Of a stretch of 64,000 nucleotides of DNA, positions 92 through 63,297 are shown in pieces. The position numbers were made by a program, and so were the translations under genes. Numbering within the stretch: position 1 is the first letter of the stretch; the number at the start of each line of letters is the position of its first letter. The stretch spans positions 62,001 through 126,000 of the IMG/VR virus record IMGVR_UViG_3300049460_000128. One strand, 5' to 3'. The notes below the pieces were generated by a model that worked only from the letters and a program-made list of their open reading frames with translations, was not told where the DNA came from and did no database searches.

Positions 92-1675
92 TCACATAAT
101 TGCAAGAGGCATTGAGTCATCATCTTCTGGACTGACAATCTCTTTCAAGCTTTCGCTGTAATCTTCGTTAAGCCAACCAATAATAGCATCAAGAATACGT
201 ACCACCAATAAGGTGGCTGAAATCAAATCATCATGTTCGCCACTCTTAGCCGCATAGCTGGCGCCGCTACTTACGAAGTTCTTGAATTGACGAATCAGTG
301 ATTGACTGTTGACTTGCATACGGCCACTTTCCATCAATGATTTCAGCTTACTGCATGCACTCAGTTTCTTCGCATTGCTGGTGTTCAGACCCTTGCGGAA
401 ACGACCACGACCCTGTCCAGCCACACGTTTTTCACTCACAAAGATACCTGGGAAGTTATGCTCACCCGTATCTTCAATGATTTGCAGTACAGCTTCGCCG
501 ATACTGTTGTTTTCAACAGTCCAGAATATCTCAGGCTCTCCTTGTTGTTCTGGATTCTCCAGCAGACTTTGATTCAACATCAACAAGGTTTGCATGAGAA
601 TTTTGATCTGCCCTCGTGGTGGAGTTTTGTTGTGCTGCCACTCAGCAACTTGAATCATTTCAGGTACTTGAAATACCTGAATAGCCGCATAGTCACCACC
701 TGTACCCAAACATGGATCCAATCCCAACAGGAAGGTCTTATTTGGTTCAGGCTCGCAGAACCAACGTACTTGACCGGTATAGAATTCTGGTTCGCTGTAA
801 CGCAGTTGCACCAATGTCAGAGCATCAATTAAGGTCTCGTCATCTGATACGAATTCGCATTCAAATTCCTGTTGGAATCGTGCGGCACCCAAACTGGCGC
901 GGAATGGTGCAGCCCATGCTTCATCTCGATCTGGGTGACGATCCCACTTGACCTTGATAGGAAAGAAACCATTTGCACCTTCGCCATTTGGCAGCTGATT
1001 ACCAAATTCGTCAGTATTTTGATTTGCTCCACGCCAGATCTTAGCAAATTGGTCTTCGTCATTCTTTGGCGTTGATGTGATAATGCAGCCACCACCAGTA
1101 GCCAGAACAGGCTGAATAGCAGTCCAGAATTCGTTTGCCATACTTGGACGCACGAATGCAAACTCGTCGCAGTACAGAAGGGTAATGGACAGACCACGAC
1201 CAGCATCGGCGGTGGTTGCACGCGCAGTAATGGCCGAACCATTGTCGAATGAGATGGTACCTTTGTTGTACTCCATCACACCAGCTCGTAAATGGTTTGG
1301 GCATTCCTCGTAGCCGTATCGAATACGGTCCATAATCTCCATAGCCTGATTGAACTTATTAGCAGCAATCAGAATCTTGGTGTCTGGGACAAACATTGCA
1401 CGCCACAGCAGATATGCAGCAGCCACGGTAGTTTTACCCATTTGTCGTCCAGTCAATGATACACAGAAGCGATGATTGTGGTACGCTTCAATCATCTCGT
1501 GCTGGAATGGATACAACACGAGTGGAATAGAGCCCTTGATTGGGTGCTGAACTTTCAGGAAATTCTCGATGAAATAAAGTGGATCATCCAGGCATTTTTC
1601 CAGTTCTTCTCGTTGTGTTTTGGTGAAAGGAACCTTACTGTGTCCTTTCTTGGTGAGTTGATACTCGTTAGCCAT
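92..1675 (-). CDS. terL: Terminase large subunit (T4 gp17-like)
   Basis: Walker A GRQMGKTT, Walker B LLYCDEFAF, TSTP coupling motif, C-terminal RNase H nuclease (GLDPCLG...HDDL). Confidence 0.95.
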   Translation of the reverse strand: MANEYQLTKKGHSKVPFTKTQREELEKCLDDPLYFIENFLKVQHPIKGSIPLVLYPFQHEMIEAYHNHRFCVSLTGRQMGKTTVAAAYLLWRAMFVPDTKILIAANKFNQAMEIMDRIRYGYEECPNHLRAGVMEYNKGTISFDNGSAITARATTADAGRGLSITLLYCDEFAFVRPSMANEFWTAIQPVLATGGGCIITSTPKNDEDQFAKIWRGANQNTDEFGNQLPNGEGANGFFPIKVKWDRHPDRDEAWAAPFRASLGAARFQQEFECEFVSDDETLIDALTLVQLRYSEPEFYTGQVRWFCEPEPNKTFLLGLDPCLGTGGDYAAIQVFQVPEMIQVAEWQHNKTPPRGQIKILMQTLLMLNQSLLENPEQQGEPEIFWTVENNSIGEAVLQIIEDTGEHNFPGIFVSEKRVAGQGRGRFRKGLNTSNAKKLSACSKLKSLMESGRMQVNSQSLIRQFKNFVSSGASYAAKSGEHDDLISATLLVVRILDAIIGWLNEDYSESLKEIVSPEDDDSMPLAIM

Positions 1676-2672: not shown

Positions 2673-3443
2673 TTAACCTTTACGAATAGTGTTTGGTGTA
2701 GACGCCTTGACAACTTGTTTGCCACCCTTAGTCAAGTATGTGTGCTTGACGGTGTCGCCGGAATTGTCATAGTTGCCCGTTGGTGCTGGCTCTTTGGCAT
2801 CAGCATCTTGTTTCTTGGTTTTTGGTACTTTGATATCACGATTGAAATCATCAGCCTTGACATCGTTCTTTGGCATATCCATCCAGGCGAACAATGGAGC
2901 GGGCGCGTCAACTTGTTCTGGTTGGTGTTCTGCTTGCAGAGTTTTCAAGTATGAGAGCAGGCGATTGTTGTAGTCATTACCATAATAGTTTTGACCATCG
3001 GCTGTTTGCTCTGCGTCTGAATACACGGAGTCAGTGCTCAAAAGAGGCTCGCGTTCCAGTCCTTTCTTTTCAGCATTGGCTTCAAGCTCGCGCTCTTGTG
3101 CAATGCGGTTGCCTTCGATTTCAATTGGTTCGTTATCGCAACGAACGACTACATATTTTTCAGGAATATTCATGATGTTACGAATATCCTGTTGCATGAT
3201 GTACGAACTGCATGGCAAGGTGGTTGCCACGTCGATCATATACACTTCAACATTTTGCAGGTCTGAGAAGTCCAGAGGATTCTTTTGCAAAATGGAACGT
3301 GATGGTTTTGAGATGCTCAACAGTCTGAATTTCGTCAAATACGCGGCGATCTGAGCAACAATTTCAGAAGTCAGTGGCGATGCTGTTTTGATACGATAGT
3401 TATAGACCTTTTGGCTCTCGGCTAAGTATTTTTTAAAATCCAT
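2673..3443 (-). CDS. Hypothetical protein, probably virion-associated
   Basis: 256-aa ORF with GGAG RBS and upstream TAAATA; starts MDFKKYLAE (T4 capsid-targeting-like). Confidence 0.75.
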   Translation of the reverse strand: MDFKKYLAESQKVYNYRIKTASPLTSEIVAQIAAYLTKFRLLSISKPSRSILQKNPLDFSDLQNVEVYMIDVATTLPCSSYIMQQDIRNIMNIPEKYVVVRCDNEPIEIEGNRIAQERELEANAEKKGLEREPLLSTDSVYSDAEQTADGQNYYGNDYNNRLLSYLKTLQAEHQPEQVDAPAPLFAWMDMPKNDVKADDFNRDIKVPKTKKQDADAKEPAPTGNYDNSGDTVKHTYLTKGGKQVVKASTPNTIRKG

Positions 3444-3532
3444 GGAGTGCTCCCGTCAATAATCCTATTTAGCGTACCAGACGGAATGAAAGTATGTGTT
3501 AACGATATGAGCCAAGTGTCATACTCCAATAG

Positions 3533-3554
3533 AAAAAGGGCCCTAGGGCCCTTC
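3533..3554. terminator. Terminator hairpin
   Basis: aaaaa-GGGCCC-ta-GGGCCC-tt palindrome downstream of the 3574-4092 gene. Confidence 0.6.
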
Positions 3555-3573
3555 TCGTCAATCCTGTGACCTT

Positions 3574-4092
3574 TTACTGGCCGCGAATCTTTTTGATCAG
3601 ATCATTTCGATCGGCAATGATTACCGCTTCTTGCTCAATTATCTCGTTACCTTCACCTGACTTTTGACGCAACAACGCTTTCAGTTTCTCGTTTTCGAGT
3701 TTAAGCTTCTGTGCTTTCAATTGCGCATCACGCTTTGAATTCTTGGCATCCAGGGCCAATTTGTACATACCAGCTGCGGTCTCAAATATACGACCAGCTG
3801 AACGAGTGTCAACGTTATAGCCAAGATCCATCAAGTCTTGTGCATGTTGGAGTGTCTGGCCATAAATGTCATCAGCACTATCGGCGTGATCTTTTGCTTC
3901 GACGACGTCTGGGTCTTGACGGACTGTAATTGGAGATTCCAAGGCAGCAGTCAAAGCATCAACGTCAGCATTACCTTCTGCTTCCAGCAATTCATCCTCG
4001 GTGAGCGAATCATGATCATCCGTTTCACGAGGAGCCTTTAACAGATCTTCCAGTGTTGGCAAGTCCAAGGCTTCTTGAATAGTTCTACTCAT
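3574..4092 (-). CDS. Putative terminase small subunit (gp16-like)
   Basis: 172 aa, helical/coiled-coil centre and C-terminal 'IIADRNDLIKKI'; lies near TerL; product is an inference. Confidence 0.45.
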   Translation of the reverse strand: MSRTIQEALDLPTLEDLLKAPRETDDHDSLTEDELLEAEGNADVDALTAALESPITVRQDPDVVEAKDHADSADDIYGQTLQHAQDLMDLGYNVDTRSAGRIFETAAGMYKLALDAKNSKRDAQLKAQKLKLENEKLKALLRQKSGEGNEIIEQEAVIIADRNDLIKKIRGQ

Positions 4093-4535
4093 TTTCGTTT
4101 ATTTCCTTTGGCAAAGAGCTGATCTTCAGTTAACACACGGAATGTCAGGCCATGCTTGGCACACCATGCAGCAGCGGCTTGCCATTTGGCTTTGTTTACC
4201 GCCAATGTTAATTTATCTCGCTTGCTCTTGGCACGATCGTCATATGCTTCCTTGGCGGGTTTGATCTCAATCAATTCAGCACGACGATTACCAGTCTTAT
4301 CTGTGAATACAACCATGAGATCTGGAATGTAGAAAGTCCATTTGTTCGTCAACGGATGCAAGTAAGGAATGCTGAGACTCTCACTCGCCCATTGAGTTAC
4401 ATTTGGATGTGCATCCAGAACACGGAATACCGACAATTCCCAGCTTGACCTAAAAGTGATAGGCAGCGTTCCAATATACTTGGCTGCATTTACTGGTTGA
4501 TAATGCCCTTGACTAAACTTACTCATTATGCCCAA
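4089..4535 (-). CDS. gp4: Head completion nuclease (T4 gp4 / TnsA-like)
   Basis: SKFSQGHYQPVN..KY.G...FRSSWE...WASES..IPY...YIPD...LIEIKP signature. Confidence 0.9.
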   Translation of the reverse strand: MGIMSKFSQGHYQPVNAAKYIGTLPITFRSSWELSVFRVLDAHPNVTQWASESLSIPYLHPLTNKWTFYIPDLMVVFTDKTGNRRAELIEIKPAKEAYDDRAKSKRDKLTLAVNKAKWQAAAAWCAKHGLTFRVLTEDQLFAKGNKRK

Positions 4536-5863
4536 TCCGAATAATCATCGCCGTCACTAATGTCGGGCAAATCGATTGTACCAACTGCACTATCTTGTAA
4601 TACTGAAGTAGAGTATGAAGAGAATGCAGATGATATTGAACTACCATTTGATATCTTTTGCGCTTGACCTTTGGCAATATCATACAACGATGAACTAACG
4701 CCAGTACTCGAACCTGGGTTACTTGCCACTTTACCGATAAGGGTATTCAGGGCCCCAGGGATCTTACTGGTTACTTGATTCAAAGTGGACGTAGGCACGC
4801 CAGGAATAGACAAGCCATTAGTCAATGACGAGATCGCATTGCCGAAGTTCATATTACCAAACGAACTCAACACAGACGAGGTATTACCTGGAAGCTTTGA
4901 CAGCAATGCTGTATTGCTACCAAGCGCACTTGTGATTGATGAAAATGCGGAGGTCAACCCAGCATTTTTGTTTATCGTATTACCAACAGCTGAAAAGTTA
5001 TTGAATGCGTTTGAAATTGATTTGGTTTCAAACGGCAAATTTGACGAACGAGTAGCCCCACGAGTCTCGCTCGTGGGCTCGTAAACGTCACCAACGAAGT
5101 TACGATCAGTCAAAAGACTCTTAATGAAGTCAGAGGCTTTCGCATCTGTCATTGAGACTGGAACGTTGTCGTTGTTATAGATGATTGTTTCGTACTCCAA
5201 TGTCATTGTAATGCCATGACCATGCACACTGCCGTAATCCATTTCGTCCGGGTCGAAACTGGAGATTTTTGGATTGATCAAATCAAATTGCGTGTATGTA
5301 CCATTCGAGAACTGATAGCACTCGATTTTAGAGAAGAAACCCTTCGGCGAATTTCTAGTCGCCTCAGTTTGCTCTTCGTTTGGAAGAGTTAGGCCAAACC
5401 CTGTACCACCGGTGTTCTTGAAGTCAGTGTTTGTGAGATCATAATCCCAATCATTAGCAGTGGTCTTGCGGAAATCACCAAAGTAGAATGCCGCATATTC
5501 GTGCCACATTTGCATGACCATCTGATCAGAGGTATCATGAAACTCAATCTTGACTGCACCAAATTTGATATTGGTTTGAACTAAACGTTTTTTGTTATAC
5601 TGATTAAGCGATTGCATATCAGCAGAAATACGTGGGCGATCAAACCGCTTAACGGCAAACTGAAGGCCAGTTTCCCATTTAGGCGGAGTGTTGGTTGTCG
5701 TCCCACGCACAAAGCGGATCAAGAATAGGAACTGAGGACGTGGTGCATTGAGGGCATACTTTCCGCCATCAAAGCGATCACCATCGAATCCAAAAATTCG
5801 ATAAGCTTGTCCGGGGCTACGCTGAAATAGCGGTGCCCCTTTGTCGTTCGTAGTCTTGGCCAT
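4526..5863 (-). CDS. Baseplate tail-tube initiator/cap (gp54/gp48-like)
   Basis: Tube-like N-terminal half (RPRISADMQSLNQYNKKR...IEFHD...LDY..) directly after the tube gene; S/N/G-rich C-terminus. Confidence 0.6.
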   Translation of the reverse strand: MAKTTNDKGAPLFQRSPGQAYRIFGFDGDRFDGGKYALNAPRPQFLFLIRFVRGTTTNTPPKWETGLQFAVKRFDRPRISADMQSLNQYNKKRLVQTNIKFGAVKIEFHDTSDQMVMQMWHEYAAFYFGDFRKTTANDWDYDLTNTDFKNTGGTGFGLTLPNEEQTEATRNSPKGFFSKIECYQFSNGTYTQFDLINPKISSFDPDEMDYGSVHGHGITMTLEYETIIYNNDNVPVSMTDAKASDFIKSLLTDRNFVGDVYEPTSETRGATRSSNLPFETKSISNAFNNFSAVGNTINKNAGLTSAFSSITSALGSNTALLSKLPGNTSSVLSSFGNMNFGNAISSLTNGLSIPGVPTSTLNQVTSKIPGALNTLIGKVASNPGSSTGVSSSLYDIAKGQAQKISNGSSISSAFSSYSTSVLQDSAVGTIDLPDISDGDDYSDWA

Positions 5864-5866
5864 CTA

Positions 5867-6454
5867 TTAAACGCCCGAACCTGGCAACAGACTCGAAGCA
5901 ACGTTTGCTGGCATAAGTTCGCCTGCCTGGGTTGCGATATCGTAACGAATATCCAGATCAATGTGCATAGCATCGCTGCTGCTGTAATCCAGATCGCCAT
6001 ACGAAACGCCAGTCAGGAAGCAACCTTCCAGGTACCATTGTTCGATAACCGTATCATTACCACCGTCCATCTGTTCGATGTACATGTTGAACTTGTAGTT
6101 CACACCAGCCAATGGGCTGGTCTGCTCAAAGTGGTTCTGTTGTTTCTGAACTTGGTGACCCACCAATTTGGAAACACTGTTGGTTACGTCGTCGCGAACG
6201 GTGATCTTTACTGGATCCCATTTTGGCTTAGACATGTAGTACGCGATCGAGTTGTAGCTCTCGACCTCTTTTTCCGCGTACTTGACGCCAGGGCGGCTGG
6301 CAGAAATGACCTGTTGGGTCAATTCAATACCACCTGCAATCGGACCAAAGTTGATCACGCGAACACGGAACTTATATTTTACTTTTGGCTGAAGGATGCT
6401 ACCACGACCGGTACCACCGCCCAACGGAACGCCAAATTTACTCAAAACCGTCAT
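5867..6454 (-). CDS. gp19: Tail tube protein (gp19-like)
   Basis: QPKVKYKFRV...W.L.GCF...YGDLDYSSSD...I.YD pattern, 195 aa, near the sheath gene. Confidence 0.85.
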   Translation of the reverse strand: MTVLSKFGVPLGGGTGRGSILQPKVKYKFRVRVINFGPIAGGIELTQQVISASRPGVKYAEKEVESYNSIAYYMSKPKWDPVKITVRDDVTNSVSKLVGHQVQKQQNHFEQTSPLAGVNYKFNMYIEQMDGGNDTVIEQWYLEGCFLTGVSYGDLDYSSSDAMHIDLDIRYDIATQAGELMPANVASSLLPGSGV

Positions 6455-6549
6455 ATGAAATACTCCATAATGAAACTAATGTAGTATTTATGAATGGCGA
6501 TGAATCAGTAAAATGACAATATTTATATGACACCAGAACAGTGCCATGG

Positions 6550-6786
6550 AAGTTGTCAGTATGCCGAATGCTTCAATTTAAAGCTAATCAATGCTTTTCG
6601 GGCACGGTCGAGTCCAACCGGCATACTGACTTTGCTCTAGCCTCTTTCACCTGTCATTTCAGGGACAATCGATACCCCTCGCTGCGACGCAAGGCCTACC
6701 TTTATGTGAGTCGCACCCACCTCCCAGTCTCCGGTATCGATCTTATGGGTTCAGGAATAATTCCTTGCCGGCCACCCTTACGGATA
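6550..6786 (-). ncRNA. Candidate structured non-coding RNA
   Basis: 12-bp perfect stem 6555-6566/6619-6630; 9-bp stem 6668-6676/6733-6741 with nested 6-bp stem 6683-6688/6710-6715; GTAA tetraloop on the minus strand; upstream sigma70-like promoter. Confidence 0.5.
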
Positions 6787-6791
6787 AAAAC

Positions 6792-6819
6792 ATTATACAT
6801 GCTGGACGCCATCCTGCAA
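6792..6819 (-). promoter_or_regulatory. Sigma70-like promoter
   Basis: Minus strand TTGCAG-16 nt-TATAAT. Confidence 0.55.
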
Positions 6820-6975
6820 TTATTTTCTTGGCTTCTGGCTATGGTTCAATTCTATGATCTCCAGAAACACCAAGTACGGATTGTCCGATCGCGGTGGTTC
6901 ACTGGGAGAACGATCTGGTGATAGGCGAGCTGGACGAATACGCCCATACTTGCGGGTTTTTCGCAAGAAGTCGCC

Positions 6976-7197
6976 ATGACCCTTAAAGAGACGTTCGCAA
7001 TAGAAAGTATACGATTTCACATGCCTGACACTGACATGTTGGCGATTGAATCTATAGCCCAAAGACTCCAGGTATTTGGTCCACTTTTGACGAACCGTAT
7101 GTGCATTACCACTATCAAGGAACACGGTCTTCTTCAATGTAAGATTGTGGATGCGGATTTTGAAATTACGAATGGGCATCTGGCTTCTCTCCCTTAA
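6976..7197 (+). CDS. Small hypothetical protein (strand uncertain; competes with 6820-7179 minus)
   Basis: 73-aa ORF converging on the 7305-7331 terminator. Confidence 0.3.
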   Translation: MTLKETFAIESIRFHMPDTDMLAIESIAQRLQVFGPLLTNRMCITTIKEHGLLQCKIVDADFEITNGHLASLP

Positions 7198-7304
7198 AAT
7201 AATGGTAGAGAGCGGATAAAAATTCAGACAAATGGAGTATCATCGTGACAGTATATTGAAAAGAGCCATGAAATCATAATTGATCTCAATACCATTTAGC
7301 CAAT

Positions 7305-7331
7305 AAAAAACCGCCCCTAAGAGCGGTTTTT
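7305..7331. terminator. Terminator after the tail sheath gene
   Basis: aaaaaaCCGC-ccctaaga-GCGGttttt. Confidence 0.7.
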
Positions 7332-7345
7332 CTGAGTGCTGACTA

Positions 7346-10210
7346 TTAGGTCAACGAATCGCCTGAGTTACGGATACGAACTGGCAAGTAGATGAACTCA
7401 ACCGACTTGATCGGTTGGATGTACATGTCACACCACAATTCGTTACGGTTACGACGTTCTGCGGTGTTGTTCGACGTATCGCAAACAACTGCGAAGTCTT
7501 CCAGGGCGCGCAGACCAACCAAACCAATCAGGAAGCGTTCGATAGTAGTCTTGAATGCATCACGAGTCTGCAAGTCATTCTGTTCGAACAAGAACGGCTT
7601 GGAGATATTGTCCAACTGGTAACGCAGGTAGTTGGCCAAACGAGCAACGTTGATACGATCCAAGGCGCTAGCAACTGGGCTCAAAGTCTTCTGTCCATAC
7701 ACTACCAGACCACGATTCGGGATGTAAGCAATCGGGTTGATCTTGTTCTGGTACAAGACGTCGCGCTGACCTTGGTTCAAGATTACTGGCTTGTATTCAC
7801 CTTCAGAAGTCAAGTAACCAACTGATGCTGCATTGGTAACCAAACCACGGTTGAAACCAGCAGGAGCGAACCACTGATAAGCAACTTGGTCATTGTACGC
7901 AATCGTACGCAGAGCAATGGTCGAAGGTGGGACCATAATTTCGGTACCATCAACGTTAGTGCTCAGACCCCATGGGTAATAGACACCCACGTTCGTGTTG
8001 CTAGAAGTCAAACCATCATCGCCGTTACTTGCGGCATTGTTGGCATTCGTTGCCCAACGTTGGATCGAAGTGCTGTCTGGTGTCAGACGTGCTGGGGTGT
8101 CACCAACAATGAACGAAACTTCTTTCTGGTCAGTGTTGAGGGTGATCATCTCATCGATCAGTTCTGGGTAGCCAGGAGCTGCCAACAGGTTGTAGTAAAC
8201 CATTTCCGAACGGATCTCTTGATTACCAGCCACCACCGCAGCCATAGCACGAACAACCATAGTACGCTGAGCTTTACGGCCCATGTATGGTGAACCGTCA
8301 ACTGCATTGCCGCTTGTGGTTACCCAACGACCAACATTGGTTACTGGTGGGAAGACAACAGTGTCCAGACCAACCGTGTAAGTGTTCAGCGAAAAGTCGG
8401 TGTTCGCATCGTAGCCACCTTCAGCGAAGTATGTGCCTTTCCATTCTTTGACGTTGTAGGTACCAAAGCGGGTGTTGAACAACAGAGTACCAGCCGAGTG
8501 TGTACGTGGATCAACGCAGTCTGGATCAACGAAGTTACTCAGAACCAGATCGTTTTCGCTTGTGCTGTTACGAACGTAGTCGATAGTTGCACCAGTGTAG
8601 TTCGGACCTGAGTCTTGACGTGCATCAGCAAACACGATGCCGTATGGTGTGGTTTGATCAGTATTGTCGATCAGAACCCAACGACGGGAGTTGGCTTGAT
8701 AGCGATACAGTTTTGGGTAGTTTTCCAGATCGCTGGAATCCAACCACAGATCGTTGTCAACCAGTGACGAACCATCCAATTGATAGTTTGGTGCCGAGCC
8801 AGCAATTTGCACGCCGTGCTTATCGGTCATTGGATACATCTTGCGATAACCCAACCACTGATCGCCATCACATACCATGATGTCAGCTTGGAAATTGGTG
8901 TTGAACCACATACGACCATCTACTGGGTCAGTGGAAGGTTCAACGTAGCTTTGTTCGTAAACCAACTGCGACCATGCACTACCTTGCCATACGCGCAATT
9001 GTTGACCAGCCAATGGATTTTGACTTGTGCCTTCAACGTTGTACTTAACGTAAACGGTGCCGTTAGTTGGTGTTGCGCCCAGGGCGGCGTTTGCGGCCAC
9101 ATCATCCGCGTACATTGGCGCATCAGCGACAACGAAAGCACCAACGGACGAGCTGTAGTATTTCACTACGAACTTAGTGCCGCTGTTAAGAGCTGTGGTC
9201 TTGATCCATACGTCACCAGAAATGCTTCCTTGAGGAACACGATTGTGGGTAGCATAAGTCAGTTTGACGCTTTTGGTGACGCCTGCTGACAACTGCATGG
9301 ATGCCAATGGGGTGCCGGTAACGTTCTGGAGTTCAACACTGTCCAGGATGAAGTTAAAACTGATACGACCAGCCGAGTCATTGGTTGCAATGATTTTATT
9401 GTTCAAGCTTGGTGCTGCTGCGATTGCGGCATTGATATCCGTAATGGCCTGTTGAACGCCGTTTGAAGTCAATACGATCACGACACCATTGATACTGAAC
9501 GAATCGTTTGGTGTGATGTTGGTGATACCCGTCGAGCCACGGATGATGTTGCGGGTCATCTTCCAGTTATTGGAACCAACCAGATACCACACGCCGTTCA
9601 ATTTCTCGAACATGCGGTTAGTGGCTTCAATGGTCACAACTGCGAAGTCGCCGTCTTCACCGAATGCAGCTTGTGGGAAACCAGTCGCGATGTCGTAGTT
9701 TGTTGCATCGCTTACAACCAAGATTGGTTGTTTCAGGAATGGGTCCAAGCTCGATGCGCCAGTGCTCTGGAACACACCAAACTGAGTGTTGACCAGATCC
9801 AGCCAGTAAGTACCGTTCAGTGGGGCACCACGTGGGGCTGAAACACTTGCATCCAGTTCTGCCAGATCGATGTCTGCACGAACCACGTATGCGGCGTTGT
9901 TGATACCCAGGAATTGGTATGCAGCGTGCAGACCATATTCATTAAGTTCATGGGCGTGAACTGGTGTACCTTGCACGGTGGCAAAGAATGGATCACCGAA
10001 TGTTTGATTCAATTCGCGTTGGCTGGTAGCCAGGTACAGCTTGCCGGCTTCACTTGGGACGGTGCCAGGAGCGATACCAACACCAGTTGGCGATGCTTTG
10101 TTATTGCGTGTTGCAAAAACGATCAATGGGACCGTGCCGGGACCGGCACTACCATAAATGGCTTCATTGATGATCTGTACATCTACGCCAGGTGAGACTA
10201 AAGTTGCCAT
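7346..10210 (-). CDS. gp18: Contractile tail sheath protein (gp18-like) with large internal insertion
   Basis: N-terminal MATLVSPGVDV; C-terminal WFAPAGFNRG...INPI...GQKTL...LDRINVARL...FEQND. Confidence 0.95.
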   Translation of the reverse strand: MATLVSPGVDVQIINEAIYGSAGPGTVPLIVFATRNNKASPTGVGIAPGTVPSEAGKLYLATSQRELNQTFGDPFFATVQGTPVHAHELNEYGLHAAYQFLGINNAAYVVRADIDLAELDASVSAPRGAPLNGTYWLDLVNTQFGVFQSTGASSLDPFLKQPILVVSDATNYDIATGFPQAAFGEDGDFAVVTIEATNRMFEKLNGVWYLVGSNNWKMTRNIIRGSTGITNITPNDSFSINGVVIVLTSNGVQQAITDINAAIAAAPSLNNKIIATNDSAGRISFNFILDSVELQNVTGTPLASMQLSAGVTKSVKLTYATHNRVPQGSISGDVWIKTTALNSGTKFVVKYYSSSVGAFVVADAPMYADDVAANAALGATPTNGTVYVKYNVEGTSQNPLAGQQLRVWQGSAWSQLVYEQSYVEPSTDPVDGRMWFNTNFQADIMVCDGDQWLGYRKMYPMTDKHGVQIAGSAPNYQLDGSSLVDNDLWLDSSDLENYPKLYRYQANSRRWVLIDNTDQTTPYGIVFADARQDSGPNYTGATIDYVRNSTSENDLVLSNFVDPDCVDPRTHSAGTLLFNTRFGTYNVKEWKGTYFAEGGYDANTDFSLNTYTVGLDTVVFPPVTNVGRWVTTSGNAVDGSPYMGRKAQRTMVVRAMAAVVAGNQEIRSEMVYYNLLAAPGYPELIDEMITLNTDQKEVSFIVGDTPARLTPDSTSIQRWATNANNAASNGDDGLTSSNTNVGVYYPWGLSTNVDGTEIMVPPSTIALRTIAYNDQVAYQWFAPAGFNRGLVTNAASVGYLTSEGEYKPVILNQGQRDVLYQNKINPIAYIPNRGLVVYGQKTLSPVASALDRINVARLANYLRYQLDNISKPFLFEQNDLQTRDAFKTTIERFLIGLVGLRALEDFAVVCDTSNNTAERRNRNELWCDMYIQPIKSVEFIYLPVRIRNSGDSLT

Positions 10211-61518: not shown

Positions 61519-63297
61519 TTATTTCTCGCCTTCCGCGTTGAACTTCGTAAAGCCATTCTCTTTCTTGACCATCAACACATTGCTGACTCGAGCAATCAAG
61601 TCTTCTTTGTGACTGATCAGGAAGATTGACTTCTGACGTTCAGCTGCCATTTTCTTCAACAAGCCCAATGCTGCATCAGCCCCTTGTGCATCAAGACCAT
61701 TGTCCAAGTATTCGTCAACAAACAACAGGTTGATGTTTTGGTTCAACGATTCCCAGACATCACGGAATGCCCAGCTTGTGGCCAGAATAACACGATTCAT
61801 TTCACCACGGCTCAACTGTTCAAAGTCGAAGTCGCGGCCCATCAGATCGATCTCAACACTGAGGTCACTCTTGAATGTTACTTCATGTGGCAAGCCCAGT
61901 TTTTCCAGATAGTAGTTGAGACGATGATTCAACTGATTACTGTTTTGGTCAACAATCTTCTTACGGATGAACGAGTCTTTGTTGACCAGCAGCTTCAACA
62001 AGAAGTCCTGATGCTTCAACAGCGTATTCAGTTCCACCAATGCTTCATCGTCAATTGGCTGAAGGCCAGTGCTAGACAATGTGGTAATTTGTTCCGCGTA
62101 TGGATCAACACTGCTCTCTTCCCTAAAGATCGACTCCAGGATGTTGTTGATCGTGTTTTTATGTTCCAAAGCCTGCGCGAGTGTTTGATAAACAGTGCGT
62201 GGTTCGTCACCAATCGTCACCAGACCGGCGTTCAGCTCATTTATGTACTGGTATGACGCTTCCACGTCTGCAACAGCACTGGCGAGCTCTGGTTCCAACG
62301 CAATTATCTGATCCTTGATATCTTGGATCATTTTGTCATGCTTGGCATCATGGATCTCTTGACCGCACGTATGGCACTTGTGCTCTTCAGCATGGGCCAA
62401 GTTTGAAGCCAGTCGGCCCAACATCGTGTCTTTGTTGACCAGATCTTGCTCTTGACGACGCAAGTCTTTGCTTGCTTGGTTCAACAATCCAACGAGTGTT
62501 CGATAGTCGGCCAACTTGTGGTGACTATCAATCTCGTAATCGATATTGAGGTTTTGCAGTTCTTCCAATTGACTCTCAGCCGATGCAATACGACTGTGAC
62601 GTGCATTTTGCCAAGTGTTGCTCTTGTTCGTCAGGTCGTTGATCGTATTATGGATCTTTTGATTGCTGTCCTGTGCTGCCTTGATTCGATACTCTTCCTC
62701 TTTGATCGAGTCTTTGGTATTCTTGATCAACTCTTTCAAGTTCTCACTACGCAGACTGATCTGAGTAATACCCAACAGCTCTTCGATCAACACTCGCTGA
62801 TCACCTGGGCGCAGCTTCAGGAATGGTTCCGTGTATGTGTTCATTGCCACAATGTGACGGAACATGTCGTGACTGAAACCCAGAATCTTGTTGATTTCAA
62901 CCTGAGTGTGTTTGCCCTCACCCTGACCTTCATCAGTCTCAGGTTCCATCAATTGCGTGTCATTGATAAAGTACCGGAAGAACTGTGGCTTGCGACCGCG
63001 TTCAATACGGAATTGTTTGCCATTCACTTCGAAGGAAATGTTGACAACCATATTCTTGCCGTTGATACTGTTGACCAAGTTGTCTTTCTTGATGTTGCTC
63101 AGCGGGATACCAAACAAGCCAAACGAGATGGCTTGCAGGATGGTACTTTTGCCCACGCCGTTACGGCTGTTGACACCACCAACGTCCATGTTCTCACCCA
63201 AGATCAGGGTGAGTGATTGACCGTCAAGGTCAAGTGTCTGTGGCACGTTGCCGACAGACAAGAAATTGCGCATGGTTACGCTTTTGATATTCAACAT
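61519..63297 (-). CDS. gp46: Recombination endonuclease ATPase subunit (gp46, SbcC/Rad50)
   Basis: GVNSRNGVGKST Walker A, CHTC Zn hook, LSRGE signature, LLFVDE, ISH. Confidence 0.95.
   Translation of the reverse strand: MLNIKSVTMRNFLSVGNVPQTLDLDGQSLTLILGENMDVGGVNSRNGVGKSTILQAISFGLFGIPLSNIKKDNLVNSINGKNMVVNISFEVNGKQFRIERGRKPQFFRYFINDTQLMEPETDEGQGEGKHTQVEINKILGFSHDMFRHIVAMNTYTEPFLKLRPGDQRVLIEELLGITQISLRSENLKELIKNTKDSIKEEEYRIKAAQDSNQKIHNTINDLTNKSNTWQNARHSRIASAESQLEELQNLNIDYEIDSHHKLADYRTLVGLLNQASKDLRRQEQDLVNKDTMLGRLASNLAHAEEHKCHTCGQEIHDAKHDKMIQDIKDQIIALEPELASAVADVEASYQYINELNAGLVTIGDEPRTVYQTLAQALEHKNTINNILESIFREESSVDPYAEQITTLSSTGLQPIDDEALVELNTLLKHQDFLLKLLVNKDSFIRKKIVDQNSNQLNHRLNYYLEKLGLPHEVTFKSDLSVEIDLMGRDFDFEQLSRGEMNRVILATSWAFRDVWESLNQNINLLFVDEYLDNGLDAQGADAALGLLKKMAAERQKSIFLISHKEDLIARVSNVLMVKKENGFTKFNAEGEK

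Follow-up and report, generated by a model that had tools for sequence, protein, structure and literature searches.

The 64,000-nt stretch analysed here (the window, positions 62,001 to 126,000 of IMG/VR record IMGVR_UViG_3300049460_000128) belongs to a 296.6-kb jumbo phage record that is 70% complete. Its tail tube protein is 62% identical to that of Sinorhizobium phage Phosso, 57% to that of Agrobacterium phage Atu_ph07 and 51% to that of Pseudomonas phage PA5oct. The genes in the region of interest run on the minus strand, in the order tail sheath (7346-10210), a small ORF (6820-7179, ORF119), the candidate RNA, tail tube (5867-6454) and a second tube-like protein (4526-5863). A GC-rich hairpin flanked by A and T runs (7272-7340) lies just after the stop codon of the sheath gene. 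It gave weak terminator-like Rfam alignments and has a counterpart in the same arrangement in Atu_ph07, and it looks like a two-way terminator that separates the sheath gene from ORF119 and the RNA, although a simple terminator scan did not call it. The features of the candidate RNA gene, all on the minus strand, are as follows.

6814..6819 (-): TTGCAG, -35-like hexamer of the RNA's promoter, starting directly after the stop codon of ORF119
6792..6797 (-): TATAAT, -10 hexamer after a 16-nt spacer; the likely start, which is inferred, is near 6785
6548..6785 (-): predicted RNA of about 240 nt, both ends inferred
6775..6784 (-): P1, short 5' hairpin with a GNRA tetraloop (GUAA), specific to the window's clade
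6754..6764 (-): H1 hairpin (GGAA/UUCC), ending at the invariant segment
6743..6753 (-): invariant single-stranded segment UGAACCCAUAA, of which CCCA (6746-6749) is the 5' strand of a pseudoknot
6733..6742 (-): 5' strand of helix P3, pairing with 6667-6676
6723..6732 (-): conserved junction GGAGAC plus UGGG (6723-6726), the latter being the 3' strand of the pseudoknot
6704..6722 (-): H3 hairpin, whose loop (6709-6717) holds UGCGAC (6710-6715), which pairs with the H4 loop
6695..6703 (-): conserved junction AAAGGUA(GG) between H3 and H4
6677..6694 (-): H4 hairpin with loop GUCGCA (6683-6688), the partner of the H3 loop
6667..6676 (-): 3' strand of P3
6650..6663 (-): H5 hairpin with a hexaloop (AAAUGA here) on a nearly invariant closing G-C pair
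6555..6630 (-): 3' multi-branch domain, a 12-bp closing helix (6555-6566 with 6619-6630) around three small hairpins, variable between clades
6548..6554 (-): pyrimidine-rich tail (AACUUCC) after the closing helix, a possible weak terminator (inferred)

The original prediction, made from the sequence alone, was of an uncharacterised phage RNA of about 240 nt with its own sigma-70 promoter, upstream of a tube gene with its own promoter boxes. Every helix it listed is present in the sequence, and the interpretation is supported by what follows. Two points need correction. The 6-bp helix TGCGAC/GTCGCA, described as enclosed by a 9-bp helix (6668-6676 with 6733-6741, part of the 10-bp P3), is not a nested stem but a loop-loop (kissing) contact between two covarying hairpins. 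Moreover, the -35 hexamer matches the consensus at only 3 of 6 positions, and a promoter scan did not call the site; the promoter is supported by its conserved position in relatives.

Folding of the single sequence is only suggestive, with -83.5 kcal/mol and z = -2.0 against shuffles for the minus strand and z = -1.7 for the plus strand. Rfam 15 (4227 models) gave no hit over 6550-6800 even at E up to 10, only chance hits outside the RNA, and nothing over the RNA in 11 related loci. ARAGORN found no tRNA or tmRNA in the window. A blastn search with the gap against 50,697 phage records gave no match.

The proof of structure comes from relatives. We first collected loci through the tube protein, which is independent of the RNA. 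Six of these hold a conserved block between a small ORF and the tube gene, and a seventh locus lacks it; the alignment already showed invariant stretches separated by helices of unrelated but complementary sequence. A pattern built from two invariant stretches then found 41 viral loci, among them the cultured phage Phosso, and 44 metagenome loci. Covariance models built from these (R1 and R2) confirmed 76 hits, of which 59 are distinct. The loci L015/L017 (viral) and L099 and L110 (metagenome) are chance pattern matches. The window is hit at 6646-6772 with 117.7 bits by R1 (E 3e-22, although E-values from the shortened calibration are rough) and scores 98.7 bits with the wider model R2. As the pattern fixed three motifs (CCUGAACCYAUA, GACURGG and YAANGR), their invariance in the large set, and in part that of the junction between H3 and H4, is partly by construction. 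They were, however, already invariant in the six loci found through the protein.

On the 59 distinct sequences, 93.1% of cells in the core structure are paired, against 60.5% in shuffled controls, the covariation score is 0.835 against 0.202, and 681 cells show change on both sides, against 194. Controls in which the partner was slid by 1-3 columns give covariation scores of 0.05-0.12. In all, 27 of 34 pairs show compensatory change. All ten pairs of P3 change on both sides and are 95-97% paired, the four pairs of H1 are 94-96% paired with two changing on both sides, four of the five stem pairs of H3 and all six of H4 covary, and in H5 four to five of the five pairs covary with 98% pairing. 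The third pair of the 4-bp pseudoknot (CCYA with URGG) is C-G in 32 sequences and U-A in 27 and is never broken, and RNAalifold also picks this helix. The loops of H3 and H4 stay complementary across the family with quite different sequences, such as UGCGAC/GUCGCA, UUUCCA/UGGAAA, UGCUUA/UAAGCA and GCGAG/CUCGC. At least five contiguous pairs occur in 49% of own loop pairs against 14% of mismatched pairs, and the mean duplex energy is -3.95 against -1.90 kcal/mol. G-U plus U-G pairs number 157 against 16 A-C plus C-A, so the RNA strand is the minus strand of the window.

The core of about 105-130 nt is thus a junction of P3, the pseudoknot helix, H3 and H4, locked by a kissing contact and flanked by H1 and H5. 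The window's clade has two additions. The 5' hairpin P1 changes its stem from CC/GG to GCU/AGC and its loop from GUAA to GCAA in relatives. The 3' branched domain is closed in seven members of this clade by an 8-13 bp helix of unrelated sequence. At the position of the pyrimidine-rich tail, relatives have ACUUUCUUC or UUUUUUCAUC.

The gene contexts suggest a transcription unit of its own. A sigma-70-like pair lies at a fixed distance upstream in most members, with at least 9 of 12 matches in 47% of them against 10% of control windows, and at the window's site TTG is kept at the same place in 6 aligned relatives. One clade instead has a TAAATA box at -44 to -52. That clade and a few other members end in strong intrinsic terminators, whereas after the window's RNA the scan called no terminator. 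The proximal late-type box of the tube gene (6484-6491) is invariant in all seven aligned loci, including the one that lacks the RNA, which fits a separate transcription unit. In five loci a tRNA gene follows the core within about 100-170 nt, and in one of the collected loci, L026, the core, without H1, fills the 103 nt between tRNA-Ser and tRNA-Thr, so that tRNA-processing enzymes could release it there. In another locus, L014, the tRNA-Gln called 10 nt after the RNA core (5460-5541, minus strand) is unusual in being 82 nt long with its anticodon at position 38, and may be a tRNA-like module of the RNA rather than a working tRNA. The phage's own tmRNA and two adjacent tRNA-Met genes lie outside the window, the latter at 255936-256092 of the record. 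The tmRNA (6223-6647, complement) is called as a permuted, two-piece type with tag ANDSSFRQAVAA, an arrangement that appears to be typical of Alphaproteobacteria and would fit a rhizobial host. Other members of the family lie beside portal, DNA polymerase, DNA ligase or phosphoesterase genes. These contexts fit a trans-acting stable RNA and argue against a leader of one particular gene.

A recurrent neighbour is Ro60. In Phosso and Atu_ph07 the gap between sheath and tube genes holds a Ro60/TROVE gene. Of 22 records searched, 11 have a TROVE gene, and in 9 of these the RNA lies 0.9-2.7 kb upstream on the same strand. Counting the metagenome set, a TROVE gene lies downstream in about 11-13 of the loci with enough flank; a TROVE gene lies next to the RNA in about a third of relatives. 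One of these (L090/L101) shows no sheath or tube gene within the short flanks available, and another (L034) has a divergent TROVE-like protein. Rfam finds no Y RNA in eight Ro60 loci, and published bacterial and phage Y RNAs are encoded next to Ro60, often 5' of it (PMC4201824, PMC12135203). This makes the RNA the best candidate partner of these phage Ro60 proteins.

However, several findings speak against this idea. No TROVE gene was found in the window's own record, which is incomplete, but two records that are 97-100% complete also carry the RNA without Ro60. The whole clade of the window is Ro60-minus, and the Ro60 label needs at least six changes on the RNA tree. Conversely, Atu_ph07 has Ro60, but covariance models found no such RNA there. 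Most linked loci share the same sheath-tube synteny, so that part of the association may be inherited rather than functional. A doubly locked compact fold is, moreover, more typical of aptamers and ribozymes than of Y RNAs. Apart from this, RtcB is absent from the window's record, which gave only a weak, sub-threshold RNA ligase hit.

The surroundings of the Ro60 gene hold further elements. A protein of about 100 aa with no Pfam hit always sits directly before the phage Ro60 gene (for example at 2509-2832, 2382-2702 and 2970-3272 of the loci L002, L003 and L054), also in Atu_ph07, and it remains in L019 and L029/L089, where Ro60 itself is gone; it is a likely Ro60 partner protein. The small ORFs between the RNA and Ro60 in relatives have no Pfam hits. 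In locus L061 a wcaG RNA motif (4037-4152, plus strand; Rfam RF01761, 56 bits, above its gathering score) lies between the new RNA and the Ro60 gene, in a stretch of about 2.6 kb with almost no ORFs that may be an island of several RNA genes. In the clade that lacks Ro60, ORF119 could be a partner of the RNA instead. It is a small basic protein with a conserved N-terminal RNFK(V/I)R(I/F)HN motif that sits directly upstream of the RNA in the window's clade only (26-35% identity in 5 relatives). It has no Pfam or PHROG hit and no usable Atlas hit, and its AlphaFold model (pLDDT 74, mixed beta/alpha) has no PDB match.

Together, our data suggest a model in which 6548-6785 is a separate gene for a stable, compactly folded small RNA of a new family found only in phages. 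The host polymerase probably transcribes it from the sigma-70-type promoter directly behind ORF119, and transcription probably ends at the long helix and pyrimidine-rich tail of the 3' domain, while the tube gene further downstream has its own late-type promoter. In this model the RNA acts in trans through its shape, as a binding partner or scaffold, and not as a messenger, an antisense RNA or a leader of the next gene. We consider the model more likely than not, but transcript ends, action in trans and the partner are inferred; a search for sequencing runs returned only a rhizosphere metagenome DNA run, marked as the possible source, and no RNA run. The leading suggestion for a specific role, which is tentative, is that of an adaptor RNA in RNA surveillance or tRNA metabolism, working like a Y RNA with a Ro60-type protein.

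At the level of RNA families the RNA is new. An exact-pattern scan of 185,579 prokaryote species genomes gave a single hit, which the covariance model rejects (14 bits), and literature searches found no description of the RNA or its motif. The covariance models also found nothing in Atu_ph07, PA5oct, a more distant jumbo phage or the T4 rnaC/rnaD region. The family has at least 59 distinct members from soil, rhizosphere, freshwater and other metagenomes, and supplies an annotation for a recurrent empty gap between the sheath and tube genes of Atu_ph07/Phosso-like jumbo phages.

As a kind of molecule, an orphan, ornate, phage-encoded stable RNA, it joins T4 RNAs C and D, ROOL and GOLLD. Like T4 RNAs C and D (species 1 and 2), which are stable non-tRNA small RNAs of unknown function, it can lie in tRNA arrays and might be released by tRNA processing, but there is no sequence or structure relation: model R2 with filters off scores at most 8.4 bits in the T4 tRNA region. 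ROOL and GOLLD are likewise highly structured orphan RNAs of phages and prophages, often near tRNA genes (PMC12286853), but they are 500-800 nt long and form multimeric cages, and the core described here gives no Rfam match to them. With bacterial and phage Y RNAs (YrlA, Yrn1, phiLo Yrl1/Yrl2) it shares, in many relatives, the position upstream of a Ro60 gene on the same strand, and the link to tRNA-type processing. It differs in that the family consensus lacks the conserved GNCGAA(N)G or GGUCCGA motif, which in Y RNAs lies on the 5' strand of a stem formed by the two ends (PMC4201824, PMC12135203). The long-range helix P3 has no conserved sequence, the 5' and 3' parts of the window's RNA fold separately, and there is no tRNA-like domain with T and D arms. 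Instead there is a pseudoknot and kissing-loop core, which persists in phages without Ro60 and is absent from bacteria in the scan above.

Orphan RNAs with this much conserved tertiary structure have often turned out to be ribozymes, aptamers or parts of ribonucleoproteins. A ribozyme, either self-cleaving or acting in trans on tRNA or other RNA, is an unlikely but surviving alternative, in which the double tertiary lock would build an active site. In our reading, the strand order (pseudoknot 5' strand, P3 5' strand, pseudoknot 3' strand, hairpins, P3 3' strand) resembles that of HDV-like ribozymes, of which the theta ribozymes sit next to phage tRNA genes (PMC10879173), and the junction nucleotides are highly conserved. 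However, no Rfam ribozyme family matches at E up to 10. The pseudoknot has 4 bp and starts with C-G, unlike the 6-7 bp P1 helix of HDV-like ribozymes, and there is no small hairpin between the P3 5' strand and the pseudoknot 3' strand. H1 and the segment upstream of the would-be cleavage site are conserved, so they are probably kept in the mature RNA.

A small-molecule aptamer, sequestering a metabolite or nucleotide signal in trans or acting as a riboswitch in some relatives, is slightly less likely still. A junction closed by one helix, with two hairpins whose loops kiss, is the plan of purine, lysine and similar aptamers, and the junction strands are conserved while the helices vary freely. 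Unlike purine-riboswitch-type aptamers, however, the RNA has an extra pseudoknot into the junction, and no riboswitch family matches. In the clade where a terminator and then a fresh promoter follow, and in those where tRNAs flank the RNA, there is no expression platform feeding a downstream gene. Downstream genes differ widely, and no ligand is suggested by context. More generally, a new class of catalytic or ligand-capturing RNA expressed in trans by jumbo phages, for instance one that soaks up a host signal molecule as the RNA counterpart of protein sponges, is improbable but is not ruled out by the compact, doubly locked fold with conserved junction nucleotides, the lack of known relatives and the absence of a fixed downstream gene.

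A cis-acting leader that controls the tube gene, or the Ro60 operon in relatives, is very unlikely. The RNA always lies upstream of these genes in the same orientation, and one clade has the order RNA, terminator, tube gene. But the invariant late-type box lies between the RNA and the tube start codon even in a locus without the RNA, and the RNA also occurs inside tRNA arrays and next to unrelated genes.

A protein-coding role of the 126-codon plus-strand ORF (6541-6921), or a chance set of inverted repeats, was tested and rejected, since the ORF is open only in the window, has three stops in the nearest relative (tube protein 91% identical), has no Pfam or PHROG hits, and no frame is open across the family, while substitutions in the helices are compensatory with the G-U bias of the minus strand. 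Another plus-strand ORF (6976-7197, 73 aa), antisense to ORF119, has a weak PHROG hit (E 0.003, dNMP phosphatase) that is probably spurious, because the conserved ORF is on the other strand.

The gap between sheath and tube genes is a hot spot for variable cargo. In PA5oct it holds a 538-aa gene (3296-4912 of the retrieved locus) annotated as a homing endonuclease, with a weak NUMOD3 hit, in place of the RNA or Ro60. In locus L059, a group I intron (426-643, minus strand; Rfam, 89 bits) lies just downstream of the Ro60 region, where the tube gene is expected. The 194-aa tube ORF is not intact there, so the tube gene may be interrupted by the intron.
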